Below are positions 1 to 33,289 of a DNA stretch of 57,937 nt, one piece after another. The notes beneath the pieces were generated by a model. The model searched no databases, was not told the DNA's origin, and saw nothing but the letters and a program-made list of their open reading frames with translations. The stretch is from the NCBI GenBank assembly GCA_002269645.1, contig NIVC01004148.1, forward strand, positions 1 to 57,937, given 5' to 3'. Position 1 is the stretch's first letter. Each line of letters starts with the position of its first letter. This DNA comes from Macrostomum lignano. Lineage: Eukaryota. The translations under genes were made by a program, and so were the position numbers.

Positions 1-219
1 AACAAAATGCAGGCCAAATTTCATAAACACCTTTTCGGCTTTATTCCGACAAACACTTCAGAAGTCTGTGAAAAACCGACAAAAACTGTAAATATGATTC
101 AAGAACTGGCAACAAATGCTTTTGAAAAAGAGCAGTAGTCAATCGGATTTGGCCTTTATCTCCAACTGCCTACAAAAATCCTACCTATAAGGAAGAAAGG
201 AAACTTTCCTTCGATTATT

Positions 220-2650
220 CACCGAGTGGCATCGATCTTATCGGGAGTAGATGTACCATTTTTACCGATGTTATCGGTTTGAAAACATGGCGGGAATGTC
301 GGCAACATGTCATCATCCGATATAATCGGGGCATAATGCTTTTAAATTGAGCATGTTTTGCGTTTTTTTGAATTTCACGTTGCTAAATGTATAGAACTGG
401 CCTAGCGTATTCATTTGCATAAAATATATATTATGCTTGTGCTTCATGTGTTTGAAACTTTACTCGAGGTCAAGGCTCCCCTCAGTGTGGAGAGTTTTTG
501 TATACAGGCTACAGGTTTTTATAACTATGACAAATATTAATTAATGCTTTTACTTGGGTGCTTTTACAAATTCATCACCATTTACTCTAACCAATAAAAT
601 ATTAATATTATTAATGTTACCTAAGAGTGACAAACTGCAAAACTTCTTCAAGTTAGGCCTACCTAAAAATTGTTTGAAACCTTTAGACCAAAATAGGAAG
701 AATTGATTTTAATTTATTGTCTATATATTTGATTATTTCTGCAAAATTCTTAAATTCTTAAATTCTTCTAGACCTTATAGAAGACTTCTTTCCTTAATTT
801 ATATTAGGAAAACTTTTGAAATATTAATATGGTCATGGATTAACTTAACTATAGCTAAAAACTTTGAAAAGGAAGACAGAATAGGAGTCTAGACTATAGT
901 CCTAGAAGGGGACAGATAGGGTATATCTATATTATATTGTCCTTTTATTGTCGATACTACCAATATATTCCTTATCCTTATGCTAGGCTCCTACTCTCTA
1001 TATCCCTATATCCTCCTTGCCTTCCTTGCCTTCCTACTAGCCCCCTAACCTCTCCTAACCTCCTAAGGATTCCCATATCCTTATTGCTCTCCTACTAGGC
1101 TTTTATCCTCTATACCTTCTATATATTTTTCCTTACCCTATTGCTAGGTTCTAATCCACCAAACACTATGCCCTCATTATCCTCTATATCCTCCTTTCCC
1201 ATCTACTGGGTCTTACCTTCTATAATATATATCCTCTTGACCTCTTATCCTCTTGCTGGCTCCTATCCTCCATATCCTCAATATCCTTCTCTTTTTACTA
1301 GGCTCCTACCCTCTATAGTCTATACCCTCCTTACCCTCCTTCCCACCTGCTGGCTCCTACCTTCCATATCTTCTTATTCTCTTGCTAGGCTCCTACCCTC
1401 CATGCCTTCCATACCCTCTATGTCTCCTCCTAGGCTCCTTTCCTCTATGCCTTCCATGTCCTCCATGTCTCTACTCTCCTAGGCTCCTACCCTCCATGTC
1501 CTTCTTACCCTCCATACCCTCCATGCCCTCCATACCCTCCATGCCTCATAGGTTCTTACCCTCCATGCCCTCCATACCCTCTATGCCTCCTAGGCTCCTA
1601 CCCTCCATGCCCTCTATACCCTCCATGCCTCCTAGTCTCCTACCATCCATGCCCTCCATACCCTCCATGCCCTCTATACCCTCCATACCCTCCTTGTCCT
1701 CCTACCCTCTATACCCTCTTATCCTCCTGCTAGGCTCTTACCCTCCATGCCCTCCATACCCTCATCCTCCTGCTAGGCTCTTACCCTCCATGCCCTCCAT
1801 ACCCTCCATGCCTCCTCCTAGGCTCCTACCCTCCATGCCGTTTTACCCTCCATACCCTCCATGCCTCCTAGGTTCTTACCCTCCATGCCCTCTTATCTTC
1901 CTGCTAGGCTCTTACCCTCCATGCCCTCCATACCCTCCATGCCTCCTCCTAGGCTCCTACCCTCCATGCCCTCCATACCCTCCTTGCCCTCCTACCCTCC
2001 ATACCCTCCTAGTCCTCCTACCCTCCATACTCTCTTACCCCCTCCTAGGCTCCTACCCTCCATACCCTCCATGCCTCCTCCTAGGCTCCTACCCTCCATG
2101 CCCTCCATACCCTCCATACCCTCCTTGCCCTCCTACCCTCCATACCCTCTTAGCCCTCCTACCCTCCGTACCCTATTTGCCCTCCTACCCTCCATATTCT
2201 CTTACCTCCCTGCTAGACTTGCTAGACTCCTACCCTCCATGCCCTCCATACCCTCTTACCCTCCTCCTAGGCTCCTATCCTCCATGCCCTCCATACCCTC
2301 CTTGTCCTCCTACCCTCCATATCCTCCTTGTCCTCCTACCTCCAACCCTCCATACCCTCCTTGTCCTCTACCTCCAACCCTCCATACCCTCCTTGTCCTC
2401 CTACCTCCAACCCTCCATACCCTCCTTGCCCTCCTACTAGGCTCCTACACTACGTGCCATCCTTACCCTCCTTACACCCCTTCCCCGCCTGCTAGGTTTC
2501 TATCTCCCATTCCCTCCTTGCCCTCCTGCTGGCTCGAGCCCGTGGCTCCCACTCTTTGTACCCTCTTTCCCCGCCTGCTAGGCTCCTACTCGCTGTACCC
2601 TCCATACCTTCAATACCCTTTTACTTGCCTGCTAGGATCCTACTCTCTAT
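220..2650 (+). repeat. Left terminal inverted repeat of the KDZ element, with an internal C/T-rich minisatellite (ccctccatg/ccctccata, ctaggctccta units, ~960-2450)
   Basis: 220-~1890 is the near-exact reverse complement of ~14610-16283, with scattered substitutions and 1-bp indels. The inner part is the same repeat family at a different copy number. The inner boundary is approximate. Confidence 0.9.
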
Positions 2651-3057
2651 TTCGTCCTTCCATGCTGGTAGGCTTCTACCTACCATACCCTCTGTACCCT
2701 TCTTGCTATACTTGCTATAATCGTACAAGCTTGGCTTGTCCGCGTGGTGATCTTGTGTCTGAAATTGCTAGGTTGTTGAATGTTCAAAGTCATCCGTGTA
2801 TTAGGTTTCAACAAGCAATTGGTGTCTGGATTGAGTGCTTTCTGTCTAACTTGATTGCCAGTTAATGTGATTTTTTTCTGTGACCATAGGTAGTTTTTGC
2901 TTTTTTTAACTCGGTCGGCTTCACTAGCGTCTAACTTGACTGCCTGTTGTTCAAACTTGACTGCAAAATGCTATATTTCCCCACCTTGTACCCTCTATGT
3001 GATGGTACTCCATCGGCTCTATTTAGAAATTGGTAGCATATTTGCAAACAATTTCAG

Positions 3058-5216
3058 ATGACGAAGAAGGTGTTCCAGCAGCGTAAGGTCAGCGCCTGGT
3101 CTGGGGTGTATAAGATACATGGCACACGTAAGGTTCCTTCTCTCTTTTTGGCTTTCCTATAGGATAAGCGTGCCTGTGTCAGGAAAATGTTGCATTGCAT
3201 TTGTCACGCAAATTAAATGTACATCGTGCGTGTGTGAGAGAGTGAACATTAGATACGTAATCTACGTCTACGTAGTAAAACTTATTAATATCATTCCTTT
3301 CGTTACTTTAGGCAATTTCTCAGCGGAACACATAAATCGGCTAAAAGCTTACTACAATGGTCTTACTGATGAGGAAAAAGCTAATTACGCAAGTATTGCC
3401 AACGAACAGAGGAGCGGTCCGTCTGTCGCAGATCTGGATCGAATGGTTTGTTATAAATTGCAGTGTCATATAAATTTCTTCTTTTTAGCCAGTAAAAATG
3501 AATCAAACTGCATACACTGCACTGAAAATCATTGATCATTTGTTGCTTGTCGTAGTGGGAGCGGGCGCGTGTCAAATTTCCCACCCCATGTTCCCCCAGT
3601 GGCGTAGCCAGGGGCGGGGGGCCGCGGCCCCCAATCGCCTGGGGGGTGGGGCCGCTGAGGGGGGCCCGGGAGGGTGGGCAAGGCAGCTAAGGGGGCCGCG
3701 CCCCTGGGGAGCAGCTTAAGTGCTCATTTTGAACCCATTTAGTGCCCTTTGGCGCCGATTTGACGCCCTTTAGCGCCTATTTGGCGCTATTTTAGCGCCC
3801 AGTTGGCGCTATTTTAGCGCCCCATTGTCGCCTCTTCCGTGCGTCCCCCCCAATCAGAAATCCTGGCTACGCCCATGTGTTTCCCCTGGCTTCTCCTTCT
3901 TTGAAGGCTTCCGCTGATTTCTAGAGGGACGATGACTTCTTACGTGTAGCATGTTAACTTTATTTTTAGGCTCGGTCTCTCTTCAAGGACCACCATGTGC
4001 TGCTTATTGTGAAGCGACGTAATGGCAGGAACACAAAATCATGCGCATCACCCGAAGTGCTGCCATTACTGCACTCTAACGACGCGAATGGCCTTCTCCA
4101 GGTAAGATGCCTTAAATTACATAATATTTATTATAAAATCTTGGTTTTTTGTATTGAATTACAGAGTACAATTTTGGTAAAATTACCCTGAATTATTTTC
4201 TACGCCTTTCCTTGCAGCAGTTTGAACTGCTCTCATCCCAAGAGCCTTCTGGCAATGGCGTGTCTACCAGGAAGCCTACTGTTGACGAAATGCGAAAAGA
4301 AGTCCGAGCTGAAGCAAGAGCCGCATACAGTTAGTTTAATTTTTTGAAAATTAATGAAAATGAATTTTTAGTACCTGGATCAAACAGCATGATTACGAAT
4401 CCTGAAATTATGGCAAAGTTCGTAATGTTCTTAATAGCTAAAGTTTTATGCAAAAAATTATGTTAAACTTTTATGCAAAGTACAATTCAATTAAAACACT
4501 TTCTCCTTACTCCCTGCCCCGTTTTAGTGAAGGCCGGAATGGGTGCGAAAGTAAATTATCGCCAACTTCAGGGGGTATTTCGACCTCATCTAAGCAACCC
4601 ATCAAAGCTAAAAGGACTAGCTTTGCGTCGAGCATACGACACACGCCTCGACCTAGTGTTCCTTCCAGGGCATGAAAATGGTCAGGAAGACAATGATCAC
4701 AATGTGCAGGCTTCTGGCGGCACAGCAGAACACGCTCAGGACGAGAGTGAATCCATGACACTCGATTTTTCTGTGCCGAATCCGCCGACCGTGCTGAATC
4801 CGCCGACCGTGCCGAATCCGCCGACCGTGCCGAATCCGCCGACCGTGCCGAATCCGCCGACCGTGCCGAATCCGCCGACCGTGCTGAATCCGCCGACCGT
4901 GCCGAATCCGCCGATCGTGCCGAATCCGCCGACCGTGCTGAATCCGCGTACCGTGCCGAATCCGCCGACCGTGCCGAATCCGCCGACCGTGCCGAATCCG
5001 CCGACCGTGCCGAATCCGCCGACCGTGCTGAATCCGCGTACCGTGCCGAATCCGCCGATCGTGCCGAATCCGCCGACTGCTGTGCGGGCAAATCGAGCCG
5101 CTTTGCGAGCGAAACCGGCCACTGTGACGCCATCTGTCGGCATTCCGACCATCACTGTTTCGACGTCCAGTACAAAGGCTGGGTTCAGCACCGACGACGT
5201 CGAAGTGGTTTTCTGA
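3058..5216 (+). CDS. Transposon accessory gene: HMG-box-like N-terminus and (VPNPPT)n tail, ~400 aa. Exons ~3058-3127, 3312-3445, 3490-~3550, 3970-4101, 4218-4329, 4528-5216
   Basis: GT/AG-bounded exons splice in phase to give MTKKVFQQRKVSAWSGVYKIHGTRNFSAEHINRLKAYYNGLTDEEKANYASIANEQR, which resembles HMG helices (Y..LT.EEK..Y...A). Later exons give VDEMRKEVRAEARAAYMKAGMGAKVNYRQL. The exon 3 donor and the true start are uncertain. Confidence 0.6.
3597..3877. mobile_element. hAT-like MITE (~280 bp) in an intron of the accessory gene
   Basis: TIRs CAGTGGCGTAGCCAGG / CCTGGCTACGCCCATG. Flanks tgttcccc and tgtttccc form an imperfect 8-bp TSD. GC-rich, non-coding interior. Confidence 0.7.
4770..5075 (+). 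repeat. 18-bp coding tandem repeat (gtgccgaatccgccgacc), ~17 copies, encoding VPNPPT
   Basis: Visible directly. In frame within ORF 4473-5216. Confidence 0.9.
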
Positions 5217-8200
5217 TGCTTATTTTGTTTGATTTATTTAGTTCCAGTTAAATAAATCTTAAAAGCCAGGTGTCAGGATCGGAACATCACATTGAGCAGG
5301 TTTCAAATGTTATCCCGTATTGGAGAAGACAGTTTAATGAATTCTGAAAAAATTGCAGAAAGTAATCATTTTTAAGACCAGAGTTTGCGCACAAAGTGTG
5401 GCCCTTCTTGGACACCCCACACCCGATAGAACGTTGGTTGTCAGTTGTTAATTTCAGATTGTCGATTTTGAAGACGCTTGTGCAAAACAGCAAAAGACAG
5501 CAAATTATCCCTGCAGTTATTTTTGTGCCTGGAATTTTGCAATCATTTTGGCAGCTATTTTTTCAAGACGCATGTAGTTATAGTGCGTGTTGCACTTTAT
5601 ACTTGCGCCCCAATTTCCTGCACCAAATTGTTATTAAATAAAATCTGTTAGTTCATTTCTAGGTCAAGATATGCAATTTTACTCCTTATGGCCGGTTGTT
5701 CCATCTTTTGAGAATGTGTTCACTTTATTTCAGATATTTTTGTTTTCCACTTCTTTTCACTCGATCCGGCAGCTTGGATATTCGTATATGGAAATAAAAA
5801 AATTGGGAGAAACGAAAAAGAGGTTAAATTCTCTTTTAGAAGACACTTTATAAGACAAGTTAAAAATCAACGTTTGTTGAGCTATACATGTACCATACCA
5901 TATCAAACATGCATAGTCTGCATGTCCACGTGTGCACAGATGCACTGGGTGTTAAGTGTCCACTTCTCCAAATGAACTGCAGTCTTAACAGAATAGAAAA
6001 GCAAGTTGTCAAGGTCCTTGGTGCAGCATCTCGGGGCATGCCTTGAGACCTGCATGGTCACGGGTGAAGGCCGCGCCGCCTGCAGTCAGTCAACGAAGAG
6101 CCGAGTTCGCGCCTGTCCTCACAGTTGGGCACTGAAGGAACTGCGCGTGTCATTTGCCCGATGGGACTGGTAATAGTAATCTACTCGTACTTTAGAGCAT
6201 AAAAATTCTTGTTTGTACGGCGAAAAAGGCCGGATAGTGCTTTTTCAGTTCGGTCCAATACTGTGAGCCTGTCTGTTGATGTTTCAGCAAGAATGATATT
6301 GAGCCTGATTTAACTCACAATTGCGCATCGGGCTAGGGACAGGCAAAGTGCAAAGTAAAATCATGTAAATTTCCGGTCAATTTGTGCCCCTGATAAATGT
6401 ATTTAATTTGAGCTGCAAGAAATTAATTATGCCGTTGAAAAAGATTCTGAAAAATTAACCGGTGCAGCTCTATTTGAAAATTTAAAGTACGAGTAGTTCG
6501 ATATAAGGCTTGATCAAACGATATTTCCTCAGAAGTTGCTATAATACACGTAACATAATTTTGTTGAAATGCAAAGTTATTGTTACAGGGCATGAAGTTG
6601 CTATTGATGGGTGGGGTTGGCTTTTTATAATGATTCTATTATTGTAAGGAGTTCAATTCTGCGGATATTGCTCCGTCACAAAGAGACTCCAGTCATCCAG
6701 TTCACCAACCGGGTTGTAAGAGTAAGAATGTGAAGGATGTGAGCTTAAGCGTGATTTGGACGGGTGAAATCACTGAAATATACATTTTATGGTCTGTGCC
6801 GTATCTCGACTGGGCACCTATTGACCAGTGCCCCTAATCCTATGGGCACAAATGAATCTAGAAAAGGGTACGACCTTCGTTCCTGATGGTGTCAATCTCT
6901 TGATGGTGTCAAGCTTACAATTTATTTAATAATGCAAACACGTGATGGTCTAACAAGCGGTGTAAGATAATGCGGTGTAAGATGTTAACTAAAACCCTTG
7001 TAGTCCCAAGATATTTTAGGACTGGTATGTGAACCTTGTAGTGCTAAGGAGTAACTGACAAACAGTTACGATGGACTTAGATACTCACGGTAGACTGGGT
7101 AGATGTCTCAGACTTGGGTTGTCCTTGATCTCAGGGAAAGAATGTTCAAAGGGTAATTAAAACTTTCCTAAGTGTAATAGGCAGAAGGCAAAAGTGGTAC
7201 AAGAGGGCAAAAGCGAAGGAAAAGGAGGGGGCAGGTCACTTCCAGTCCGAAAACTCCTTTTAAAACATAAAGAACGCATCCCATTAGACCCAGCGTCCCA
7301 ACGAATAATGCAAGCCTATCCTATTGAAAAGTTAAATCATGCATTCCAGTCAACCTTCCAATAATGCCAGAGGATAAAATGTTGCTTGAGATGCATAATA
7401 CGGGACGCATTGTTGGATATCGCATTGATAGAAAATCATTGTCATTTTCAGTCACTTCACGGGCAACGAGTGTAGAGTCATCAAAAATCCCATCTCTCTA
7501 CGATTTTGTGATCCCCAGTAGGAAGAATGTGGATACAGTAAATTAGGATTTCTAGATCTAGAAATCAAACCTCATCTGCAAACCTCAATCTTAAATCTAG
7601 ATTTTAAAGCGCGTTGGCCAACCGCAGCCTCGATGCCCGGGGTATCACTGGCAGGTGTGTAGATTGGCCAGGCATTGGCGGGTGCGACAGCACAGTCAGA
7701 AATACATGGTGCGCGAGGTTGCAGGCTAGCGCAAGAGGCCGTTTGGAGGGCGATGCCAAGTGCGCAGAAAACTGGCGGGCGAGGCCGGAAGCGCCGGTTG
7801 CGGGCGCGAGACCGGAGGTGAGTCGCAGTCGGAGTCGTTGCAGTCGAAGGCAGACAAGGCTCAACCGGAGCCTATTGCTTGCACGACCAGAGGAGTCGGT
7901 GATGAAGTCCTTGGCCAGGATGTACCACTGCTATTGCTAGCCATGCAGACCGCGCTCAGTTACCTTAGCGAAGGCACTGACGTCCACAACGGTACCACTC
8001 ATTTCGCAAGACCGATCGGGGGGGTGTAGGGTGGGCTGGTTGCCGGTGTGCACGGGACCCCCTGTGGGTAGACTTCGTGGACGCGTCTTCGGCGGGTAAG
8101 AGGTGTAGATGTACATATACATGTAGATTGAAGCTGGAAATTACAGGATGCAAGACTAAGCTGTACCTGAAGATTAAAACCGGGACAATCTGGACTATAT

Positions 8201-9425
8201 AGTGCACCAGTGAGTGCGCAAGTCGCACCTGTCTAGGCCAAGCGGTTCTTCAATGGCAGCCTGACAAAGTTGGACTAAACTAAGCCTGTCTATATAGACT
8301 TGCATATTTGGAGCACCACCAGGTGCAAAAGTGATTTCTGAATGCCCCTTAATCCGGACAGATCTTGGCGGGATTTGACGTCCCGCACTCTGGGATAATG
8401 TGGAAGCCATGTCCATTAAAGTCCGAGTCTGAAACACAAAATAGATCGCTTTGAATGGAGTGAGGCGATTATTACGTTTGACTTGGCATGCTGGTCCAAC
8501 ATAACGGATGCAGCTATCAGCGCGCCGCAAGCGCCAAATGACACTTCAACTATTGCCCTATCAGCCGACGCAAGCGGCGGCAGAATGGCGCGCATAGCGC
8601 CGAAGCGGCAGCTTTGCAAACTTGCCCTTATACCCCTCACGGAAATCCACACTAATCCTCCAAAAGACCCGGCCCAATCTGCACAACCCCAGCCACCTCT
8701 CCGCCAATCATTTCTTCAATTCTTTCCACTTTCCTTGCACCGGACTGCAGGCAACTTAACTCATTCGTAGTTACGGGACGAGCCACCCAGGCAATTGAAT
8801 CGGCTCAACTCTTATCTCTTGCATCGCTTCTTGCTGTCTCTGGCAGCTGGTGTACATTCCATCGATTCCAGGATTGATTCCATAATTCTGTGAGTGATTG
8901 TTTCGATTCAAGCCCCAAAATTTAGCTACTCACCTGAAACAGCATTGCGAAGTAAAGAAGCAAGCAAAAAATAAGCAGGATTTAACTTTCTCGCTTAATG
9001 TACAACCTTAAACCAATCAATTTAGAGTGACGCACATGTACAATTTGTATTTGACAAAACACACTTCTATATCAAATTTTAAGCAAATACATTATACACA
9101 CTCGCAAATTTGTATACATTTGTATGACTTGCTTGCGAAGCAGAAGCTAATATAAGTAATGTAACTTCAAATACAGAAGTTACAGGAAATACAAGTACTA
9201 GGACTAAGGCTAACTTTAACTAAATATGCATGAGTGGCAGTACAATCACACACGCATTAAGGTACAGAAAACGGCATTTGCTTTGCATTTACAACAAAGC
9301 ATACGCTAGTATTACATGTACTTTACTTCAAGAGCATACAAATAATTTAGAACAATTTAGACTTCATAAAGTCATTGCATTGAGTTTCTCATTTGCCACA
9401 GTTCATGGCTACAATCGGAAAAATC

Positions 9426-12400
9426 CTACTCGTCTTCGGAATCGGATACACCAGAGAAGCTAGAGGAGCTTTCACTGAAGTATTCTGGGAAGTCACAAAC
9501 GCTTTCGGTTTTGGTCATCAGGCTGCTCTGCTCAGCATTGACTCGACGGCGCTCCTCGGTAGAACGAATGGAAAGGATGTAAACCTCAATGACCAAAAGC
9601 TGGACAGGAATTGGAAACCGGCGGCTGACGTGGCGGTCCAATCGTGAGTATGCTTCCGAAGTCGTGTCTCGAAGCGTTGCTATTGAATACTGGTTTCCGT
9701 TGAGAGACCGAAGTTGATTCATCTCCAGTGCCAGCTTCTTGGCCTTGCGCAACAGCAGTCGATACTGATGGATGCCTGGTAAATGCAATGGAAATAATGT
9801 GGCCTACTTGTGAAGATAGCTGATACGTTATCGGGCAATCGAGCAAGTGATTTTATTAACTGTTTTCTTACTTTGCTACTTCATATCTCATACCTGTCAG
9901 TGGCGTAGCAAGATTTTGGTCTGGAGGGTCACGCCAGCTGGGAGGGGGTCATGTGGGTCATTGAGGGGATTTCAAATAGGATAGCAAGAATACTATCCTT
10001 TATCTTCAATAAAGGACTATTATACTATCTCTTTGTATTCAAATTTAATTTCTTTCCTTTCAAAGGAAGATGTTTATGTTCCAATAGGAGCTTACACACC
10101 AATTGTTCGATGAAGCTCTTTGAGAACTTTCCGTTCTTCGACCACCATTCGACGCATGCTTTGGAGCCAATCTCCTGACCGCAGAGCGGAAGCGATTGCA
10201 TCTTCGCAAAGCCATTTTTCTCCCAGTGAAATTAATTGTTGAAGACTAAGCTCTGTACCGGGTGTCCGGATTGAACGGAAACGCTGCTGATTTTTTGAAT
10301 ATTTTTTGCAATTTCTCAGCAAGACAAGCAGCTGTACCATTTATTTTTGACAACAGTAAACAGGAAGGTGTCAGCATTGTTCTCATTCAAAATGGCCGCC
10401 ATTGGCCGCGATCACGCGCTCCAGCCTCTTCCTGAACTGCTGGCACACCTTCCTCACATAGTTGGTGTCCATTCTCTCCCACGCCAGCCGAACAGCAGCC
10501 TGCAGCGCTTCCACACTGCTGTGGCAGGATCTGCAGGCCTCGCTCTCCACACGCTGCCAGATTGAGAAGTCCAGCGGATTCAGGTCCGGACTGGAGGGCG
10601 GCCACATCGTCTTCGGCCAGAAGTTCGCCATGTTGTCTGCCAAGAACTGCTGGGTTGTGGCCGCTGTGTGAGCCGGAGCACCGTCCTGCTGCCACACGTA
10701 CTGTCCGTCAGGGTACTGCTGATGCAGCCAAGGCAGCACGTGCTGCTGCAGCAGCTGCTGGTAGCATGCAGCATTCACTTTGGTGCCTGGGTTGATGAAA
10801 ATGGGGGGACACCTCCGTCCATCACTCGCAACGACGCCCAGCATCATGATGGAGGCCGGGTGCTTAGACTTCATACTGTACTTCACGTGGGCAGGTGTGT
10901 CCGCGCTGCTGGCGGCGCTGATGTAGCGAGTGTTGCGCCTGTTCACGGCTTGGTCACAGGTGAACAGTTTCTCGTCGCTGAACACGCGCACCAGCGAGCC
11001 GTGGTTCTTCACCCACGTGAGCAACTGCCTGCAACGCTTGAGACGCGATACCTTCTGCTTCGAAGTGATGAGGTTCTTCGGCACCACCACCCTGGACACC
11101 ATGCCGAGGTCTTCTTTGACGAGCTCCGACATTGTCGTCTTGCTCATGTCGTGCTCACGTGCCAGTCGGCGAATCGACCTTCGGGGATTTCGGTTGACCT
11201 TCGCCCGGACGGCTGCGACGGTCTTCTTCGTCCTTTTTGTCCTCGGACGACCACCCCCATGTCTTTTGGTGACATCTCCTGTGTCGTTCAGCAGCTTCCT
11301 CACAGTGAAAATCCTCTTTCTGCTCACATTGAGCACTTCTCTGATGTCGCTAGTTGACTTTCCAGCGCAAAGTAATTCAGCGATTGCTCGTCTTTGAGCC
11401 TCGTGCTCAGCCATGGTTAGGAATAAAGCTGCAAGAGTGGATGTATTAAATTCTGTGATTTCTGCTGGTTCTGACACCCATGCAAAATTTTGAATTTTGC
11501 GAAAGATTACGTAATTAACGACGTTTTAAGCAGCGTTTCCGTTCAATCCGGACACCCGGTAATGCAAAAAACGTAGGTAGAAAAAACTGAATTTTCGAGT
11601 ATGCTGATGGGAGGATATTGAAAGAAAAATCACTTACCGTGCCGGGGCTGAAGTCGATTTATTTCATTAACATGTTGAATGACGAGCTGATCCTTCTTCT
11701 CCAGAAGCTTCTGTCGTGACTTTATCCATGCATCTACAGTAATAAAATGTGAATGTTAGCTAGAAACTTAAAACCTTATGAAAAATCAGCTATTCTTATT
11801 TTGACTGAAAGCTTGATGCGCACCCGGGTTAAGACGCAGATGATACATGTTAATAATGTGTGAGACAAGCCGTGTACGACGGTCAATGCGCATTTCTTTC
11901 AAGATTCGCCCGAAAGGACGCAGAAAGGAGAATATGCGCTCGCAGATTTCTCCGTCTGTGATACCAGTGCCAGACACGACGCGGATGGAGTTGTTGAGCT
12001 GAGAGGAAAAAATTTATTAAAAATTTATTCAGAACTAAACTGAGAAGCCCGCAAAATGACAACACCGACTAACATGAAAAGCTCTTTTAAATTATTTGGG
12101 GCTGATTAAAGCTATGAACACAAAATAATGCCCACAAAATGCTATGAGTAAAATGGTAAAGACTCACGCGACACTTAGACTCGTGACCGTATGCATGAAA
12201 AACTGGTACGGCCAACTTCGAAGTGACTTTGTTGCCGAGTTTGCATGCGACATCATAGACAAATGTCACAGCTTCTTCTGGTACACCGATGCGCTGCACA
12301 GCGGCTTTAAGGAGCTTGACAGGGTAGACAAGCCTAAAGATGTGTTGCCAAGTTTCATTTTTAAATAAGGACAACGGAGCAAAAATGAAAAATAAATGCA

Positions 12401-14076
12401 TGAGTCGAATAAAAAGTCTTACTGCTCTCCGGGAGTGCGCACATCAGAGCAGGCCCAAATGAAACCGTGGCGACAGGCTACGATGAAAAAGCCTGTTACG
12501 TCCAGCTTCCTAGAACTCGTAGTAATGCGAGACGTTTCGCCTGCTGTCCAGTTTGGACACGCACCGCTCGCAGGCGCAATATTTTCAGATGCGACATCGA
12601 CATGCGCAAACGGAAAAGGAAGATCACCAATAGGCACAGAGGCCAAGCCAGGTGCAACTGAGGCTCGATGTTTCCAGCCCATCAGGGCATCTCCGTGCAG
12701 GATTGGGCCCTGAAAAGGAAAAACAATTATGCACATAGTTTGAGATAGTTGAAATATTAAAAATTAACCTCAAGGATACTAAAAATAGTTAAGTAGCATA
12801 GCACACATTGCAAAATCTGAATAAGCTCTCACCAAATCGCCCGTCGTACACATTGCGCAGCTTGTTGGAAACTTTACAATGGACGACATGAACTGTCGAA
12901 AGTAGCCAATAGTGTTATAGCGTTTCAAATCGTAATAGAGATCTCGCTGAAAAATTCGGATTGACGCTGATGATATCTCAAATAATGGGAACCTAACACC
13001 TTAAGTATATACAATAACGGATTATACTGCAGAGAACATAAATAAAACTCACTACTTTCAATTACCAATAAGTACTGCACAAGCATACCTGCGGATGCTG
13101 CCCAAAAGCTAATCGGCGATTTTGTATAGTCGCACAAGCTTTGTCCAAAGATGTGATCCCATTTATCATAATAGAATCCAAGTTAAGTAGCAGTTCACAA
13201 GATATGAATGTAGCACTAGTAGGTGCAGCAGGAAAGAAACCACGGCTGACAAGGAGTGCTGCAGTGTGCAAGACTTCAAGCAGGCTGTATGGTACCCTAA
13301 ATTGTATTAATTAAGAGGTGACTGGTTCATTGATTTGAGCTCGGTCTAACAAAAATGTAATAACAAAAGTATAAATAGATTTTACAATCTCACCTCCATA
13401 GCCGTCGACAATCTGAACGTCTCCAAACACCGCTTCATCGGAGCAGCCGCACGCTAGGGTCACAGCTTGATTTAGAGGAGTTCCATCCTTAAATAGACAT
13501 TAAAGGATAAGACCCTGCTTACTTTTATGCATAGCCCGTAGATGAATTGTAATTAGCTTGACGATAAAACTGATATGTGCCACTAAATAAGAAGTATATT
13601 TTTCCGCATTCTGCATCCCTCGTTCCTATAAGTGGTCAGAGCGTTTAACATAAATTAAGGCTTACTTTAAGAATGGTGTGCACAAGGCCAAGATGACGAG
13701 TGTCAACACAAACAGAGCAGAAATAATCCGCACACTGTGGGCAGTATACGTTGGCATCCTGCGAACATTCAGCACACCGTCCACGTCCATCCTTAAAGAA
13801 GTGCATAAATGCCGCCAATACGTCTGGCTCTGAATTCGGATTCAGAGCCTCCCAGTCGCAGTCTTCACGGATTTCAGAAGTCGGATCCTGACTAAATTCA
13901 GACTGACTGGAAGGACCATCACGTGTAGCATTAGGAACAGAGAGTTGCGACTGCGCAAGAGGTAGGGCGCTAATTATAGATTGCTTTCTGATGCTCTGCA
14001 GATATACAGTGCGCCCATTAATGCACACTTTAAGTCGCTTGCTCGGACGACCCAGGAACAAATAGGATAGAAGCAT
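9426..14076 (-). CDS. KDZ transposase, ~694 aa, 10 exons: 14076-13666, 13487-13394, 13296-13089, ~12976-12833, 12709-12423, 12333-12168, 11998-11824, 11733-11638, 10252-10100, 9775-9426
   Basis: B-box-like CAECSQDANVYCPQCADYFCSVCVDTRH, a CxC cluster (CGC...SC...RGFFP...CAMC), and KDZ motifs LHGDALM, GFFIVACRHG, YDVACKL, VPVFHAYGHESKC and GTGITDGEICERIFS. All junctions are GT/AG and in phase except one missing base near 13270. The exon 4 acceptor is tentative. Confidence 0.88.
10258..11559 (-). mobile_element. Tc1/mariner DD37D (maT) element, copy 1, 1302 bp
   Basis: Perfect 31-bp TIRs (CCGGGTGTCCGGATTGAACGGAAACGCTGCT). TA duplicated at 10256-10257 and 11560-11561. Intact transposase ORF. Confidence 0.96.
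10383..11414 (-). CDS. DD37D (maT) transposase, 343 aa from MAEHEAQ (the open frame extends to 11477)
   Basis: N-terminal HTH, then VFSDEKLF, WQQDGAPAHT and WPPSSPDLNPLD, with 37 residues between the second and third Asp. Confidence 0.95.
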   Translation of the reverse strand: MAEHEAQRRAIAELLCAGKSTSDIREVLNVSRKRIFTVRKLLNDTGDVTKRHGGGRPRTKRTKKTVAAVRAKVNRNPRRSIRRLAREHDMSKTTMSELVKEDLGMVSRVVVPKNLITSKQKVSRLKRCRQLLTWVKNHGSLVRVFSDEKLFTCDQAVNRRNTRYISAASSADTPAHVKYSMKSKHPASIMMLGVVASDGRRCPPIFINPGTKVNAACYQQLLQQHVLPWLHQQYPDGQYVWQQDGAPAHTAATTQQFLADNMANFWPKTMWPPSSPDLNPLDFSIWQRVESEACRSCHSSVEALQAAVRLAWERMDTNYVRKVCQQFRKRLERVIAANGGHFE

Positions 14077-14104
14077 GTAAGATAAAAGAGCTGCGGCAAG
14101 GAGG

Positions 14105-16283
14105 CTATGAAGGATATGGGGTTGGGGCCGGGGGAGATGGAGGGGGGTATGGAGGGTAGGGGGAAAGGCAGGTGCAAGGAGGATAGAGGCATAGAGGGTA
14201 GGAGGCTAGCAGGAGAGTAAGGAGGGCAAGGAGGGTAGGAGGGCAAGGAGGGCAAGGAGGGAAAGGAGGGTATGGAGGGCATGGAGGGTAGGAGCCTAGG
14301 ACTCTAGGAGGAGGCAAGGAGGGTATGGAGGGTATTGAGGGCATGGAGGGTAGGAGCCTAAGAGGAGGCATGGAGGGTATGGAGGGCATGGAGGGTAGGA
14401 GTCTAGCAGGGTGGTAAGAGGGTATGGAGGGTATGGAGGGCATGGAGGGTAGGAGCCTAGGAGGAGGCATGGAGGGTATGGAGGGTAGGAGCCAAGGAGG
14501 AGGCATGGAGGGTATGGAGGGCATGGAGGGTAGGAGCCTAGGAGGGGGTAAGAGGGTATGGAGGGTAAGAAGGGCATGGAGGGTATGGAGGGCATGGAGG
14601 GTATAGAGGGCATGGAGGGTAAGAACCTAGGAGGCATGGAGGGTATGGAGGGTAAGAACGGCATGGAGGGTAGGAGCCTAGGAGGAGGCATGGAGGGTAT
14701 GGAGGGCATGGAGGGTAAGAGCCTAGCAGGAGGATGAGGGTATGGAGGGCATGGAGGGTAAGAGCCTAGCAGGAGGATAAGAGGGTATAGAGGGTAGGAG
14801 GACAAGGAGGGTATGGAGGGTATAGAGGGCATGGAGGGTATGGAGGGCATGGATGGTAGGAGACTAGGAGGCATGGAGGGTATAGAGGGCATGGAGGGTA
14901 GGAGCCTAGGAGGCATAGAGGGTATGGAGGGCATGGAGGGTAAGAACCTATGAGGCATGGAGGGTATGGAGGGCATGGAGGGTATGGAGGGTAAGAAGGA
15001 CATGGAGGGTAGGAGCCTAGGAGAGTAGAGACATGGAGGACATGGAAGGCATAGAGGAAAGGAGCCTAGGAGGAGACATAGAGGGTATGGAAGGCATGGA
15101 GGGTAGGAGCCTAGCAAGAGAATAAGAAGATATGGAAGGTAGGAGCCAGCAGGTGGGGAAGGAGGGTAAGGAGGGTATAGACTATAGAGGGTAGGAGCCT
15201 AGTAAAAAGAGAAGGATATTGAGGATATGGAGGATAGGAGCCAGCAAGAGGATAAGAGGTCAAGAGGATATATATTATAGAAGGTAAGACCCAGTAGATG
15301 GGAAAGGAGGATATAGAGGATAATGAGGGCATAGTGTTTGGTGGATTAGAACCTAGCAATAGGGTAAGGAAAAATATATAGAAGGTATAGAGGATAAAAG
15401 CCTAGTAGGAGAGCAATAAGGATATGGGAATCCTTAGGAGGTTAGGAGAGGTTAGGGGGCTAGTAGGAAGGCAAGGAAGGCAAGGAGGATATAGGGATAT
15501 AGAGAGTAGGAGCCTAGCATAAGGATAAGGAATATATTGGTAGTATAGACAATAAAAGGACAATATAATATAGATATACCCTATCTGTCCCCTTCTAGGA
15601 CTATAGTCTAGACTCCTATTCTGTCTTCCTTTTCAAAGTTTTTAGCTATAGTTAAGTTAATCCATGACCATATTAATATTTCAAAAGTTTTCCTAATATA
15701 AATTAAGGAAAGAAGTCTTCTATAAGGTCTAGAAGAATTTAAGAATTTAAGAATTTTGCAGAAATAATCAAATATATAGACAATAAATTAAAATCAATTC
15801 TTCCTATTTTGGTCTAAAGGTTTCAAACAATTTTTAGGTAGGCCTAACTTGAAGAAGTTTTGCAGTTTGTCACTCTTAGGTAACATTAATAATATTAATA
15901 TTTTATTGGTTAGAGTAAATGGTGATGAATTTGTAAAAGCACCCAAGTAAAAGCATTAATTAATATTTGTCATAGTTATAAAAACCTGTAGCCTGTATAC
16001 AAAAACTCTCCACACTGAGGGGAGCCTTGACCTCGAGTAAAGTTTCAAACACATGAAGCACAAGCATAATATATATTTTATGCAAATGAATACGCTAGGC
16101 CAGTTCTATACATTTAGCAACGTGAAATTCAAATAAACGCAAAACATGCTCAATTTAAAAGCATTATGCCCCGATTATATCGGGATGATGACATGTTGCC
16201 GACATTCCCGCCATGTTTTCAACCCGATAACATCGGTAAAAAATGGTACATCTACTCCCGATAAGATCGATGCCACTCGGGTG
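14105..16283 (-). repeat. Right terminal inverted repeat of the KDZ element (G-rich minisatellite on + strand, ~14150-15520)
   Basis: Reverse complement of the left TIR. The repeat-derived translations of ORFs 1382(+) and 15117(-) are identical for ~150 codons. Confidence 0.9.
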
Positions 16284-16628
16284 CGATTATTTATCAGAGT
16301 TAGCACAATTAGGTTGAAAATTTTAAACAAAACTTTTTCTACTTTAGCAACCTCTTAAAATTTTTAAAATGAGGTTTTTAGAATTTTAATGTAAAAATTG
16401 CTTCTTGTTAGATAAAGCGGAAAGGTAGCGGCAAATAGAATTTTCCTTTTTTATATGAACTCTAAAATTCTGTTCTTAGACTGTGTAATGGCTTTCTGCA
16501 TTCTGCATTCTTTGATTTCTCAGGACAGTAGTGTATCTCCGATTTAATAATAATCAGAGCGATATCGTATTTTTTACCTGAATAAACGACTCCCACCGCA
16601 TCAAAATAAAAAGCATTAAAAACTAAAA

Positions 16629-19600
16629 ATGGGTATTTTTTGTTACTACTATTTGCCAGATAATGTGATTCGCGGTTTTGATTCTTACAAGGTAAGTCAA
16701 TTAAGTGTTTCCATTACCTATCTAAATGTACTAAATATTATACTATATGCATAATAGAACCTCTTGAGTACTAGTTATTGAATACGTTCACATCATTATA
16801 ATATTTGGGTTATGTCATATGATTATGATCTGCATTTTTTGTGTGTAGAGCAGGCGCCGTGGAATGAGTTTTTGCCAAGGGGGGCAGGACCAAGTTTCCG
16901 AAACTCAAGCCCAGACCCTGTCTTGGACAGTGACCAAAAATTTGAGCAAAATTATGCTGTTGAACGGTATTTGAGGGGGGGGGCAATGTCCCCCCAACTC
17001 AATGTCGGGGGGCAGCTTCCCCCCCTGCCCCCCTGTTCTGCAGCGCCTGGTGTAGAGTACTAGAGTATGCATATACATTATGCACCCTAAATTTTGAAAT
17101 TACATGCACCCTGAAATTGAAAAGTGGGTGCAGTTTAGGTGCAGTCTCACAACCTATTTTTTCCTTCTGAAGCATCATTTAATAAGACAATTTGCACTTC
17201 AAGACTTAAAGTTGCACCCTATAATTGGGCATGGCCATGGTGCAATTTCGCACCTTGTCTCTGGCAAGAAAAGAACCCAGGAACTTTATGACCTAATCTT
17301 TTGTTTGGCAGGCATTGTTGTATGCTTAGGCCCTACAAACTAGTGCTATAAGGATATATAGTACTATTAGAATTGCTTATATGAATAAGACTAATGAGAA
17401 TTTTAGGGCAATTAAGATAGGTAGTTGTTATAACTTATTTGTTTGGTGACCGGACGAATAGCATTGTGGTTATTTGTCTGGTTACTGGATCCTGACCATG
17501 CTTTCTTATTCATCTGGTTAATACTGGACAAATAGACATTTTGTTATTTTTTGTTGGCCGAAAGCCAACATGGGCTAGAAAGTATTTACGAGTAAATAAG
17601 TTAGACTCCCATGCATTTTGAAATTTCACATTTTTTTGATAAAAATGCTCTTGTTTTGCAACCACTGTACCAATTGAGTTGAGTAAGGTATTAAGTGCTT
17701 CTGGGAGATCTCAAAATACTAGCACACCTTACAAGATATGGCTTCGACATCTGGGGATCAAAGTTGTCAAACTAAATTTCCTACAAAATGGTATATGGTA
17801 CTTTAATTTTCTTTTGGCGTCTTTATGCAATTCTGGTCGGTTTTTTGGGTAAAACCTTCATTTTATTATTTCACCAATTTTTCCTATGAAGCTTTTTAAG
17901 TTTGGGCTTCAAAGCAGTGCTGGATGCACAATGAAAAAATCTACAAGTATCTAAAGTTTTGTTTCCCTACAATTCTGCAGTGTTGAAAAAATCAACAAGA
18001 ATTGATTTTTCAAAAAATCACATGACTTTCGCATTATTGCTTATTATAATTTTGAGAACATGGTGCAAATAAGTCAATTTCAAATTTCTATAGCATAGTT
18101 GCTATACTATATTGGTTTAAATTGCCGCCGTCTGATTTTGCTGCTTTTGGGTTGAAAAATTGATCAGAAATCGATAATTTGTGATTTTTGGCTGATTGGG
18201 TGCCAGAAAAATGGGTGATTACATTTTTAAAAGAATGGTAGATCAAATGCGGATACTGCAACAAGTTGTACTAAGGTCTCGCTAAAATTGACTAAGTTTT
18301 TGAGTGTCTGCAACAAGTGCTCATGTGTCAAAAATGATTGATAATCAATCAAAGTAGTGATTTTTTAATATTTTGCTTGAAATCAGGCAAAAAACACAAT
18401 AGGACGGCAATATTTTAATGACGCCTGATTTCCCACATAAAGAGGCATATTTGTGTGCAATTTCTAGAGATTTAGTTCATTGGGTAAAAAATTATTGATA
18501 AAAAACTGAAAACTTGACTTTTTATTTTTATGTTAGTTCTGGGGCTATTTAAACTGGAAATGGTACAAATTTTGCACTGAAACCAATGCACAGTGTTCCA
18601 TATAGTTAATTTAACAAATTTCTTGAATTTCATAACCATTGGATGTTTTTTTCATATAAAAAATACCTTTTTTGCATCTAAATTCATCACATTAAGCTGC
18701 ATACTGCTTTGCATAATCTGCATTTGCATGCAATTGCTTGCATGGCTTTGGCATTGGGCTGAGTTAAGCTGGTTAGAAAGGAAAGGAAAGGAAAAGAAAG
18801 GAAGGAATAATCATACATACAATATACACACCCGTCCCTTCCAAGTGGGGTTGTGGCAACGCGAGAGAGCTTGGTGGCTTGGTTTGGAGGGCGTGTAATA
18901 GAGCTTCGTTTGACTCGCGCACAGACCAAGGGAAATTAGATCAATAAATGGGCGTCACGTGATTAAAATTTCGTATTAAATTTAGCTCTTTAACTGCACA
19001 TTTGAATTGCAAGCCCAGTACAAAGTTTGTTGGGCGCAAGATCCAAGTCACTACATGTACAATCCTCCCCCCCAACTAAAAAGTCAGGCAATATGGCTTC
19101 TGAAGTAGGTATGTACAGTGTTTTGGAAAGACTTTATTTATAGCTTTCTTTGCAACTCTGTTAGAGAATGAAGAGCCTTAGGATAACTTAAGTGTACTAT
19201 CTGATTGAGTTGAGAGTACAAGGTTTATGTTTATGTCCCACAAAACTGGCCTGACTTTCCAAGCATTTAAGCTGATGCTAAGAGGAGCATGCGCCAAAAC
19301 AACCAGCTTAATGAGGTGGTATATAACCCTGCTATGCTCTGTAGACTTTAGTCATTAGAATTTTTTTATATCAGGGCCTTCTAGAGCCTATTATAGAAGA
19401 CTTGATTCCAGCTCATGGCTGCAGGTCAGATGAGAGAGAAAGGGAATAGAGAAGAGATAAGACTAAAGAGAAGATAGGAGATAAGACGAGAGCTAGAGGT
19501 GAGAGGAGAGGAGAGGGGAGACTAGAGAGAGTAGAGAGAAACAGAACAGACAAAGAGAGAAAATAGGAGAAGTAGAGATTTACATTTTTATTGAGCTTCT

Positions 19601-22600
19601 AAAAGTTCTTTTTAATCAGTACAAAACTAGGTTTATCAAAGTAGTATAAAGACCCACGTCTAAAAAGAAGCCCATTCACTGGTGGCAAAAAGACGTGTGG
19701 ATCTTCATACTACTTGTATATAAGAAAATATTAATCAGTATATGAGAAAAGGTCTTAAAAATCTAGAATATTCATCACAAAACAAATAAGATACTTGTGT
19801 TAACAATTTAACCAGACAAATAACAACTGCCATTAAGATAACCCTTAATATTTCATGTCATGTTATCTTGTGAGGGATGGAGATGGTTAACAAAAATGAG
19901 AGCAGAGAAAATTAAAAAAAGAGAGATTAGAAAAAAGGATTATTGTCATTTTGAAAGAAAGATTGAAAAATATTTTTTTTCTTTATTCATACATGCACAA
20001 CAGCTGGCCAAGTGATTGGCCGACCAATTTGGCAGCCAACCAAGGAAGTTGCAAAAATGCCCACCCAAAAAAATAACCAAGTAGTAGTACTAAGTATCTG
20101 ACATGGCATTTTGGCTTAATAGGACTCTTGCCATTTACCCAAAGTTGTGTTAATGTTTATTTAGGTTTTTTACATGTAAGTCACATTTTTGGCCAAAAAG
20201 TACATTGCATTTTTGTTAAAACTAAGTTGCATGGCCAACTGAATTTCAGAGGTTGCACATGTATGTCTATATTAATAAGTTTAGGCCTATGACTAAGCCC
20301 AAATTGTGGAAGGTTTTCTGTGTACGCCGTACACATTTTCATTGAATTTTCAATCATATGCCAACAAATTTTAAATGTATGCCAAATTTCTTAATGTATG
20401 CCAACATAACCAGAAGTCAGAACCAGAACAGTATATTACAATTAAAAACAGTTTAATGGTAAAAAAATTGATGAATATTTAAATTTAAATTTAAACTACA
20501 AAAAATTGATAATGACATGATGATTGTGGTGACAATTCCAGTAATTAAAATGATTAGTAAATGAGAAAATAGTAGCAGAAAAAAGGTTTTTGAAATAACT
20601 TGACATAGAAAAATGCACGAAAAGTTCTTTATATTAATTTGTATGCCAGTTATGTATGCCACACTGTATGCCACATTGTACATAGCCAAGAAATGTATAA
20701 TAGTGTACGCCATAGAACTCAAGTGTACACCATAGAACTCAAGTGTACGCCAGAAAATTCTGGTGTACACCCTTTCTTTTGCAATATGGGACTAGGCCCT
20801 ATTATGTACTGACTTTCAATTTAAGCTTCATTGCAATAGGATATCCTTTTCAAGATGGATTTTATCAATACAACCTTGAATAGGTCTTTATGCCTCTATT
20901 CAAGTTTATATTGATACAATCAATCTCTATGAAGAATCTCCCCACCCTAAAACAACCTATTTCCCATGCTATAATAATTGGTCATTGATCTTTTTGACAT
21001 AGTCACCTCCCCCCTTCTAAGACTAGAATTTATCAATATAATCTTAAATAGGGGTCTCCCTAAAATGTGTACCACACTGCCTTGCAATGTTACATATTAT
21101 AAATTTCTTTGTTAATGTAGATTGCAGTATTTGATTATAGAAAAAAACTATTTGTTGTAAGATAAACAGAATAAATACCTTTCATTAGTATATTAAATAT
21201 TATTATTATTTTTCTTATTCTTGTTTCCATTGTTATTATTATTTTATTATAGCATTTTCCAAGCCAATTAAGCTTAGGAGCAAGCAATTTAATCCTTAGT
21301 GGGAAAATCAAGCTATTGAAGACTGGTTTTTGATTGTCTATGGCCCGGAAGGGGTCTATGGAGCAACCAATCTGAGAATTCTTTTCATAGTGCTCATACA
21401 CTCAGCAACATTGAAAAGTTTCTACCCTAGCACGCAAAAGGTCAACATTTTGGTAGGTAGAGATATTCATGGTTTGAACCATAAACAGTTGCAGCCTCGA
21501 CTCTTGCAATTGTTGTTGGATGGTTTGGGCACTTAGGATATTCCCTCGCCTGCTTCTTTTAGCCCACATTAGCTGTAGCAAGGTGGCTGGCAACGTGGGG
21601 CTCATACATGTGTAAACTCCAAAATTTGGTTGGCCGTGCGACTTAGTTTTAACGAAAATGTGATACAGTTTTTGGCCAAAAATGTGACTTGCATGTAAAA
21701 GAAGCCCTAAAGCAAGGTTAGTGTAACTTTGGGTAATTGGCAGAAGTAACTAAGACTGTCTTATTAAGGCAAAATGCCTCATCATCTACTTAGTACTACT
21801 TTAGTATTAATTTGGATGGGCATTTTTGCAACTTACCTTGGTTGGCCACCAAATTGGTCGGCCAGATTGGCCGACTCAGCTGACTATTGCACATGTATGG
21901 TGGGGCTTCCCTTTACCATTCGCAACAATTGCAGATGTCTGCCCTCCTAGTTGTACTGCACATATTGAGCTGCTAGCCACGCGTAGCATGTGCCACGCTG
22001 CCCATTTCTCTGTACTTGATCTGCAGTTTGCGGATTGCTATGTATGACTATCCAATTTGGTGAGCAACAGCTTGGATAGACATCCCAGTGTCTAGCATGC
22101 CAATGGCGCGCTCGTTCCAGGTCAGTCATTTGGCAAACCATTGCATCCAGTTGCAAACATGGATTTTAGACTCCTGTAAGCTGCTGCTATCTGTTCCATG
22201 GACTGTTTCTTTCAACTTGTCTGGCATCTATGCCCCAAGTTTTTGTCTATGGCCCAAGTGCATGTTGAAAAAATCATCATTTGTCTATGGCACAAGTCTG
22301 GCAACAAAAACCAGTTTTGAAACTCTAAATATACATGTCTAGCGTGAGGGTAGAAACTTTCAATGTTGCTGAGTGTATATCCTTTACAAATAACTTCACT
22401 GAAATAATATCTGCAAAAAATGATTAACATTAACACTTTGATTTCAGAGAAACCAATCAAAACAGGCCTGTTACTTCATAGCAACACCTGCTAGAATACA
22501 CTTTTCTCTTTACATCTAGCCATTGCAAAATGTGCTCAGCACTATCACCTCTCTCAATGGTAGCAACAATCAGGTTGCACTTTTCGTTGCTTATCTTGTG

Positions 22601-25143: not shown

Positions 25144-25187
<44 letters not shown>

Positions 25188-33024: not shown

Positions 33025-33079
<55 letters not shown>

Positions 33080-33149
33080 GTCTGTGTTTTTTGTCTGTCT
33101 ATCTGTATGTTTGTCTATCTGTCTGTCTGTCTGTCTGTGTGTGTGTGTC

Positions 33150-33209
<60 letters not shown>

Positions 33210-33210
33210 C
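32900..33210. repeat. (GTCT)n-type microsatellite upstream of TM9SF1, probably in a 5' intron or outron
   Basis: Visible directly. It ends at an acceptor-like ctgtttcccag (~33219). Confidence 0.9.
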
Positions 33211-33289
33211 CTGTTTCCCAGCTGTCCGCAGTGCTGTCAAAGTCCGCACCGCGCCTGGAATTGCTGCGCCCTCGCTCCTTCAGGCCGCA

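Follow-up and report, generated by a model that had tools for sequence, protein, structure and literature searches.

Positions 220-16283 of contig NIVC01004148.1 (assembly GCA_002269645.1) of the flatworm Macrostomum lignano very probably represent one copy of a DNA transposon family of the cut-and-paste type, within the KDZ superfamily, the transposase of this particular copy being disabled. The window analyzed is the entire contig of 57,937 nucleotides (nt). The element measures ~16 kb with a nested insert and 14.8 kb without it, and its assignment is based on an exact 8-bp target-site duplication (TSD), kb-long terminal inverted repeats (TIRs), a multi-exon gene for a KDZ transposase, and a second complete insertion at an unrelated site. 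KDZ/Zisupton is among the least-studied superfamilies of eukaryotic DNA transposons, and here a flatworm KDZ family is delimited in full, one of its insertions being known as both an intact and a defective allele. The main points of interest are perfect TIRs of at least 1.6 kb with tandem arrays, an 18-bp terminus kept in two families, a partner gene (gene 2), and a B-box.

Ends, target site and copies of the element

The 8-mer CGATTATT occurs at 212-219 and again at 16284-16291, and both copies directly abut the termini, CAC(C)CGAGTGG.../...CCACTCGGGTG. With the boundaries fixed, an exact 8-mer match would arise by chance with a probability of ~1.5e-5. The termini are CAC...GTG, the element starting with CAC(C)CGAGTGGCATCGAT and ending with ATCGATGCCACTCGGGTG; the ends of the family are CACCCGAGTGGCATCGAT...ATCGATGCCACTCGGGTG. 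By the repeat finder, arms 317-1344/15156-16183 and 1342-1842/14657-15157 are complementary at 100%. The exact 8-bp TSD and the near-identical, kb-long TIRs reported in a preliminary description of this DNA thus both stand.

When the outermost 1.7 kb of the two arms were aligned globally, three substitutions and four 1-nt indels were found within the first ~1.62 kb, and the arms fall out of register past about 1893/14605. All of these mismatches are differences private to the left arm (1-nt indels at 222, 259, 317 and 1342; single-nucleotide differences at 278, 366 and 953) relative to a second contig with this locus, L005 (NIVC01001211.1), whose arms match each other at 100% over 1600 bp. The seven small differences from this allelic contig, mostly 1-nt indels, are concentrated in positions 1-1342 of the window, at the contig end; since the left arm sits at that end, they are probably polishing errors rather than biology.

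The subterminal arrays have a 9-bp base unit (CTCCATACC-like) and a 45-bp higher-order unit. The left array reaches ~2900 and the right array starts at ~14100; the outer part of the left array lies within the identical TIR, and further inward this array is degenerate and no longer in register with the right arm. The motif TATCGGG was not enriched window-wide (6 matches vs 3 expected), and the terminal clustering of ATCGGG, noticed post hoc, is suggestive. The features of the element are as follows, with family B denoting a sister family described below and the present family called A.

212-219, no strand: left TSD CGATTATT, same as 16284-16291 and also present on either side of the allelic copy in L005
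220-1893, plus strand: left TIR, near-identical arm, CAC(C)CGAGTGGCATCGAT then ATCGGG/CCCGAT subterminal motifs, with tandem repeats from ~950
1385-2900, plus strand: left subterminal tandem array (Tandem Repeats Finder, TRF), with many inverted matches to 14100-15200
3058-5216, plus strand: gene 2, 378 amino acids (aa), five exons (3058-3127, 3312-3445, 3970-4101, 4218-4329, 4528-5216) with canonical splice sites
5217-9425, no strand: internal spacer, no recognizable gene (Pfam, comparison with family B, repeats, annotation)
9426-14076, minus strand: KDZ transposase gene, 10 exons, B-box encoded at ~13776-13679 and KDZ core in exons 5-7
Exons 1-5 of the KDZ gene, minus strand: 14076-13666, 13487-13394, 13296-13089, 12946-12833, 12709-12423 (splice model and annotated proteins)
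Exons 6-10 of the KDZ gene, minus strand: 12333-12168, 11998-11824, 11733-11638, 10252-10100, 9775-9426 (splice model and annotated proteins)
10256-11561, minus strand: nested Tc1/mariner-like element (10258-11559) with TA/TA flanks (DDE_3 and helix-turn-helix (HTH) matches, TIRs)
13254-13255, minus strand: site of a 10-bp deletion in exon 3, where L005 has AATGATCGAT (alignment to L005)
14100-15200, minus strand: right subterminal tandem array, inverted counterpart of the left array (TRF, repeat finder)
14605-16283, minus strand: right TIR, near-identical arm, ending ...ATCGATGCCACTCGGGTG (inverted-repeat alignment)
16284-16291, no strand: right TSD CGATTATT, same as the left TSD

Other copies define the family. 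L005 aligns with the window through both flanks at 99.8% identity and, for this reason, evidently represents this insertion in an allelic or homeologous contig, with the element in mid-contig and lacking both the 10-bp deletion and the mariner. The insertion had been called recent; because both contigs share it, it predates their divergence, and the claim needs this qualification. An independent complete copy, L004 (NIVC01000042.1), is 15.3 kb long, has ~99% internal identity to the window copy and lies in unrelated flanks. Its junctions read ...ACTGAGAGGC followed by CACCC, and GGGTG followed by GAGAGGCTCTT, with GAGAGGC on both sides, which is a 7-bp perfect repeat or a 7/8 match. In two further loci, L006 and L007, the transposase-side terminus begins exactly with CACCC after unrelated DNA; these carry one terminus only, similarity being lost on the gene-2 side. 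The expectation of other copies with the same termini and an 8-bp TSD is therefore borne out for the termini (L004, L006 and L007) and falls one position short for the TSD of L004. An identical intact transposase, P0006, is encoded at both L004 and L005. By these comparisons the family is multi-copy and young and includes apparently autonomous members.

The transposase and the lesions of this copy

The KDZ gene reads inward from the right TIR on the minus strand, from 14076 to 9426, in 10 exons as first described, and its exon borders match the annotated proteins P0001 and P0006. An alternative structure in which position 13345 serves as the exon-3 acceptor and a micro-exon of 27 nt is read at 13026-13000 was rejected: it contains an in-frame TAA, and P0001, P0004 and P0006 all join HPQ to RDLYY, using the acceptor at 13296. 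The intact protein P0006 is 679 aa long and annotated as partial; counted from the ATG at 14076 it has ~687 aa. The Pfam check proposed earlier, run on this protein, gave a KDZ match (PF18758) with E = 1.2e-31 and 110.5 bits against a cutoff of 26.6. In the window, exons 5-7 match KDZ profile positions 39-214, the domain falling on three consecutive minus-strand open reading frame (ORF) pieces.

N-terminal to the core, two putative zinc-binding regions are seen. A zf-B_box match scored 25.5 bits (cutoff 24.1) on the exon-1 ORF and a borderline 22.6 bits on P0006; the spacing C-x2-C-x7-C-x2-C-x4-C-x2-C-x3-H-x5-H is legible in the sequence, and paralogues are labelled "B box-type" in UniProt. 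P0006 has no Pfam match to SWIM, SAP, Peptidase_C48 (Ulp1) or CxC1-6 at E <= 1. In alignments, residues 131-230 of P0006 coincide with the part of its relatives that is positive for CxC1/CxC2, and the cysteines of columns C14, C40 and C42 are retained. The invariant core residues are D278, D394, H413/H417 and E439/E442 in P0006 numbering, which appear as D148, D264, H283/H287, E309/E312 and C220-R-H222 in an alignment of 12 relatives (A2), and the corresponding columns of 61 relatives agree. For residues 131-500, an AlphaFold model based on the 12-sequence alignment reached a predicted local distance difference test score (pLDDT) of 82 and a predicted template modeling score (pTM) of 0.80. In the model, beta-1 is the first long strand and carries D148, strand beta-4 ends at D264, and the long helix after it contains E312. 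This order of core residues would be consistent with an RNase-H-like DDE enzyme.

Thus, a stand-alone transposase of ~694 aa, as initially proposed, is supported in its architecture (multi-exon, B-box and Cys cluster, no fused peptidase, SWIM or SAP domain), and fails for this copy, which stops after 211 aa. With the acceptor at 13296, the 10-bp deletion at 13255 shifts the frame and a stop is met at 13168-13166; window exons 4-10 translate identically to P0006 residues 233-679. Because the exon-3 deletion breaks the frame, the NCBI model P0001 (BOX15_Mlig010793g2, 473 aa) starts downstream of the lesion, at the next in-frame Met. P0001 is thus a truncated reading of a frameshifted transposase, and several "hypothetical protein" models in the assembly are likewise transposon genes.

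The second lesion is the nested Tc1/mariner-like element in intron 8, an insertion of 1,304 bp relative to L005. Its TIRs are perfect, with a 33-nt match including the flanking TA (31 nt within the element), and its transposase ORF is intact (343 aa, 11414-10383; stop-to-stop ORF of 380 aa at 10386-11525, minus strand), with matches to DDE_3 at E = 1.2e-6 and to HTH domains (Pfam) and a catalytic spacing of DD37D, counted on the ORF. The ORF at 10383-11414 was rejected as cargo of the KDZ element, since it is the transposase of this nested element. The mariner is inserted 3 nt before the acceptor of intron 8 (...gcatTA, the element, then TAcag and AGCTTAG) and presumably separates the acceptor from the upstream intron sequence. 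It is absent from L004, L005, L006 and L007. A second mariner copy at 29775-31080 of the window, also with TA/TA flanks, differs by 1 nt in 1306; on this ground the insertion looks very recent and the mariner family currently or very recently active.

The copy had been called complete, a description that does not survive the exon-3 frameshift and the 1.3-kb mariner in intron 8. Evidently it cannot make transposase. Since its ends are intact, it should remain mobilizable in trans by intact copies such as the L005 allele or L004.

The partner gene, the sister family and the genomic surroundings

A second spliced gene reads inward from the left TIR, with five exons on the plus strand from 3058 to 5216, in agreement with the preliminary description; NCBI annotates only its 3' part (242 aa, 4290-5216). 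The C-terminus of its product consists of ~17 PNPPTV repeats, encoded by an 18-bp DNA repeat at 4773-5077. Pfam matched none of the plus-strand ORFs. A homologue search with gene 2 returned nothing, the query probably being swamped by low-complexity words, and a gene-2 profile gave chance matches only against PDB sequences (complement C9, E ~0.9). All copies share, in intron 2 of the gene (3540-3880 of the window), a GC-rich insert that is bounded by short inverted ends (GGCGTAGCCAGG...CCTGGCTACGCC), includes four direct repeats of 22 bp and looks like an old miniature inverted-repeat transposable element.

The paralogue P0004, with 63% aa identity to the transposase, defines family B, which is represented by loci L001 and L002 that are 99.7% identical to each other. 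Inverted subterminal arrays of kb length are present in family B too (94 repeats of a 34-bp unit), as is a B-box exon upstream of the annotated start. Its gene 2 has the same position, orientation and five exons, with 46% identity over 232 aa, and its product closes with another peptide repeat, of 17 aa. The terminal 18 nt (CACCCGAGTGGCATCGAT) are identical in family A and in L001 and L002, and the blocks ATCGGGT and ACATGTC are kept between the families within the first ~110 nt. The remaining noncoding DNA shows no detectable similarity between the two families. Because the terminus and gene 2 are conserved while other noncoding DNA has diverged, the comparison points to the terminus as a functional recognition and cleavage site and argues that gene 2 is a retained component of the A/B lineage.

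Two side observations were made in family B. At L002 4890-4915, a 12-nt inverted copy of the terminus (GCCACTCGGGTG) lies 4 nt outside the family-B terminus, forming a near-palindrome; it might be an old terminus, a footprint, or a case of target-site reuse. In gene 2 of L001, intron 4 includes a GC-rich stretch (18960-19330) that is tRNA-like or SINE-like (short interspersed element) by eye.

A link between gene 2 and HMG-domain proteins was also considered. HMG_box profiles found no match in gene 2 of family A. The N-terminus of the family B protein gave in-register, subthreshold matches to HMG_box_2 (E = 0.0038; 18.3 bits vs 22.4) and HMG_box (E = 0.01), and hhalign of both gene-2 N-termini against eight manually entered HMG boxes gave 72% probability over 29 columns. 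The HMG link is weakly supported, and an HMG-like N-terminus may be taken as a lead only. The idea of separate cargo genes comes out as one conserved partner gene. The other ORF belongs to the nested element, and the 4.2-kb middle of the element has no conserved coding signal: the spacer 5217-9425 contains no Pfam match, no internal repeats and no annotated gene in any copy, and resembles the corresponding part of family B neither in DNA nor in translation.

Outside the element, a host CDP-alcohol phosphatidyltransferase gene within 16629-27938 starts ~350 bp past the right end and is oriented away from it. An EMP70 gene is found at 33044-34201 and a bHLH gene at 40025-40759 (minus strand). 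The region 43845-46595 contains a tandem array with a period of ~13 bp (44116-46593), crossed by a 916-aa minus-strand ORF with no Pfam match; either a satellite or a repetitive protein could account for this. Nothing was found when the window was scanned with Rfam and for tRNAs.

Classification, rival readings and known systems

An exhaustive HMMER search with P0006 retrieved 764 proteins at E <= 1e-3. Closest are other M. lignano families, six or more in number and 29-35% identical, of which several are multi-copy (Mlig004599 gene numbers up to g29, Mlig001681 up to g20). The M. lignano genome contains at least eight divergent B-box/CxC/KDZ transposase families (P0014-P0022) that form one clade, which suggests a lineage-specific radiation. 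A profile search with alignment A2 returned mainly Macrostomum proteins and one from Lytechinus. Next-nearest to P0006 are proteins of Lytechinus, Branchiostoma and Apostichopus, which combine CxC2/CxC1 with KDZ in 800-930 aa, some with a B-box-like finger, followed by basidiomycete proteins that match the core only. Among the best 61 full-length relatives, KDZ is present in all 61, CxC1 in 41, CxC2 in 39, CxC3 in nine, Peptidase_C48 in one, and SWIM and CxC4 in none. A neighbor-joining bootstrap tree of the named relatives, built without Kyakuja, Dileera or Zisupton reference sequences, recovers the Macrostomum clade at 94%, A plus B at 100% and the deuterostomes at 70%, with no resolution at deeper nodes. 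An animal KDZ lineage, as first suggested, agrees with these relationships. Judged from the searchable literature, in which no paper linking KDZ or Zisupton to Macrostomum was found, this is a new member of the KDZ superfamily and may be an undescribed family; its proteins already have NCBI and UniProt entries, under the names of hypothetical KDZ or B-box proteins. One relative, L009 of the many-copy Mlig004599 family, has a SET-domain gene (14863-16865) 2 kb downstream of its transposase gene on the same strand. This could be a chromatin-modifier cargo, reminiscent of TET/JBP in fungal KDZ elements.

The start of the element 219 bp from the contig end and the several 1-nt indels of the left arm might raise the suspicion of misassembly, for example through a palindromic PacBio chimera where a contig ends, or of a simple inverted segmental duplication instead of a mobile element. 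The same structure is found again in mid-contig in L005, with different flanks and its own TSD in L004, and partially in L006 and L007; the idea is refuted and retains next to no probability. A CACTA/EnSpm-type (CMC) element would account for the CAC...GTG ends and the long arrays of short subterminal repeats. It is refuted, with a negligible residual chance, because of the Pfam assignment to KDZ and the TSD length of 8 bp, CMC-type elements having TSDs of 2-5 bp (PMC12730594). Nor is the window copy at all likely to be complete and autonomous, that is, self-mobile with a full ~694-aa transposase. All 10 exons, both ends and the TSD are there, and exons 4-10 match the intact protein exactly, but the reading frame is lost through the deletion relative to L005, the NCBI model begins only past that lesion, and the mariner lies 3 nt from the intron-8 acceptor. 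The family named Zisupton was reportedly described by Boehne et al. in 2012. Placing the element in that clade proper, of the fish type, rather than in another KDZ lineage, is favored by Repbase, which files all KDZ elements under "Zisupton". The 8-bp TSD, the TIRs and the multi-exon transposase also fit published descriptions (PMC12730594, PMC9297572), and multi-exon KDZ/Zisupton elements occur in animals (PMC9297572). However, the canonical Zisupton architecture is KDZ with CxC4 and SWIM, with or without Ulp1 (10.1101/2024.08.15.608186), and neither P0006 at E <= 1 nor, apart from a single Peptidase_C48, the best 61 relatives, which are of the CxC1/CxC2 type, contain these domains. TSDs of 8 bp are made by Dileera as well as Zisupton, those of Kyakuja being 7 bp with no TIRs (PMC12730594), and the nodes above the Macrostomum clade are unresolved in a tree that lacks all three references. 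Membership in Zisupton proper is hence rather unlikely, and the earlier label "Zisupton-type" is not upheld; the element is, by its encoded protein and its ends, securely KDZ and structurally not Kyakuja-like.

For gene 2, the question is whether the protein takes part in transposition. It may, though this is doubtful, be passively captured cargo or a family-specific passenger with no such role: no confident domain is found in family A, the search that returned no homologues outside the elements was probably swamped as noted above, the gene is missing within 10 kb of two distant Macrostomum KDZ genes, and ORFs of unknown function are likewise found in KDZ elements of Cryptococcus (10.1101/2024.08.15.608186). 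Against passive carriage speak the position, orientation and five-exon structure kept between A and B at 46% aa identity while noncoding DNA diverged, and the HMG-like signals given above (subthreshold and in register in family B; by hhalign, with manually entered HMG boxes). In the favored reading of the element, the transposase would recognize the 18-bp terminus and nearby ATCGGG motifs through its zinc-finger N-terminus, excise the element and make 8-bp staggered cuts in the target. The partner protein and the subterminal arrays would help to assemble or bend the long ends, a role that would resemble those of the En/Spm or Harbinger accessory proteins, or of HMGB1 in RAG and Sleeping Beauty reactions. 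A more far-reaching proposal, speculative and unlikely, is that A and B form a two-component KDZ lineage in which an HMG-like protein with fast-evolving C-terminal repeats synapses the long TIRs via family-specific arrays, and the B-box/CxC/KDZ transposase cuts the 18-bp terminus. If true, this would be the first accessory-factor-dependent KDZ system and a possible large-cargo transposon tool native to a transgenesis-capable flatworm. Since transgenesis is possible in M. lignano, the intact copies are testable candidates for an active large-capacity transposon and for the question of the accessory protein.

Several observations weigh against a mobile KDZ element with an accessory protein. Mobility and the 10-bp deletion are both read from sequence, the family being known from its genes and ends and the deletion from the assembly. 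Both contigs with this locus are filled, and the complete independent insertions available number two, one with a 7/8 TSD. A Foldseek comparison of the core model with PDB gave nothing significant (best, PFV integrase with E = 0.04 and TM 0.23), so that the RNase-H fold is carried by the Pfam match and the model topology. As to the accessory role, gene 2 of family A has no Pfam match, its AlphaFold model from the single sequence is unusable (pLDDT 35), and no gene-2 homologue, same terminus or long TIRs were found within 10 kb of the two distant Macrostomum KDZ genes, L008 and L009.

The transposase-disabled KDZ element at 220-16283 and its family can be compared with several known systems. 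Among KDZ clades only Zisupton is structurally well characterized (PMC12730594). Zisupton is likewise a eukaryotic cut-and-paste element, occurring in animals, with TIRs, 8-bp TSDs and a multi-exon KDZ transposase (PMC12730594, PMC9297572). By comparison of descriptions, the M. lignano element differs in its transposase of ~687 aa with a B-box and a CxC1/2-like cluster and no SWIM, CxC4 or Ulp1 match, in perfect TIRs of at least 1.6 kb with kb-scale arrays, and in its conserved second gene. Dileera fits in TSD length (8 bp; PMC12730594), and the neighbors of the M. lignano protein are of the CxC1/CxC2 type. Kyakuja shares the KDZ transposase and CA...TG termini (PMC12730594); unlike Kyakuja, with its 7-bp TSD and lack of TIRs, the M. 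lignano element has an 8-bp TSD (7/8 in one copy), TIRs of at least 1.6 kb and no TET/JBP gene. The Cryptococcus elements KDZ1, KDZ2 and KDZ3, from fungal hosts and of the Dileera clade, are multi-gene elements of 9-11 kb for which movement was shown; they too are large, with TIRs, TSDs, a CxC-type cluster N-terminal to KDZ and extra ORFs of unknown function (bioRxiv 10.1101/2024.08.15.608186). The M. lignano element, known here from sequence alone, is larger and has a B-box, arrays and a partner gene in two families. The closest non-flatworm relatives, the Lytechinus, Branchiostoma and Apostichopus proteins P0025, P0026, P0029, P0034, P0041 and P0048, are 25-31% identical over the Cys cluster and core; compared as proteins only, they share the stand-alone layout of ~800-930 aa and form a clade separate from Macrostomum. 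Beyond KDZ, two-component transposons are known in En/Spm, with TnpA and TnpD, and in PIF/Harbinger, with a transposase and a Myb-like protein. These systems belong to unrelated transposase superfamilies, but the M. lignano element would resemble them in combining a transposase with a second, probably DNA-binding, protein, and resembles En/Spm also in its subterminal arrays.

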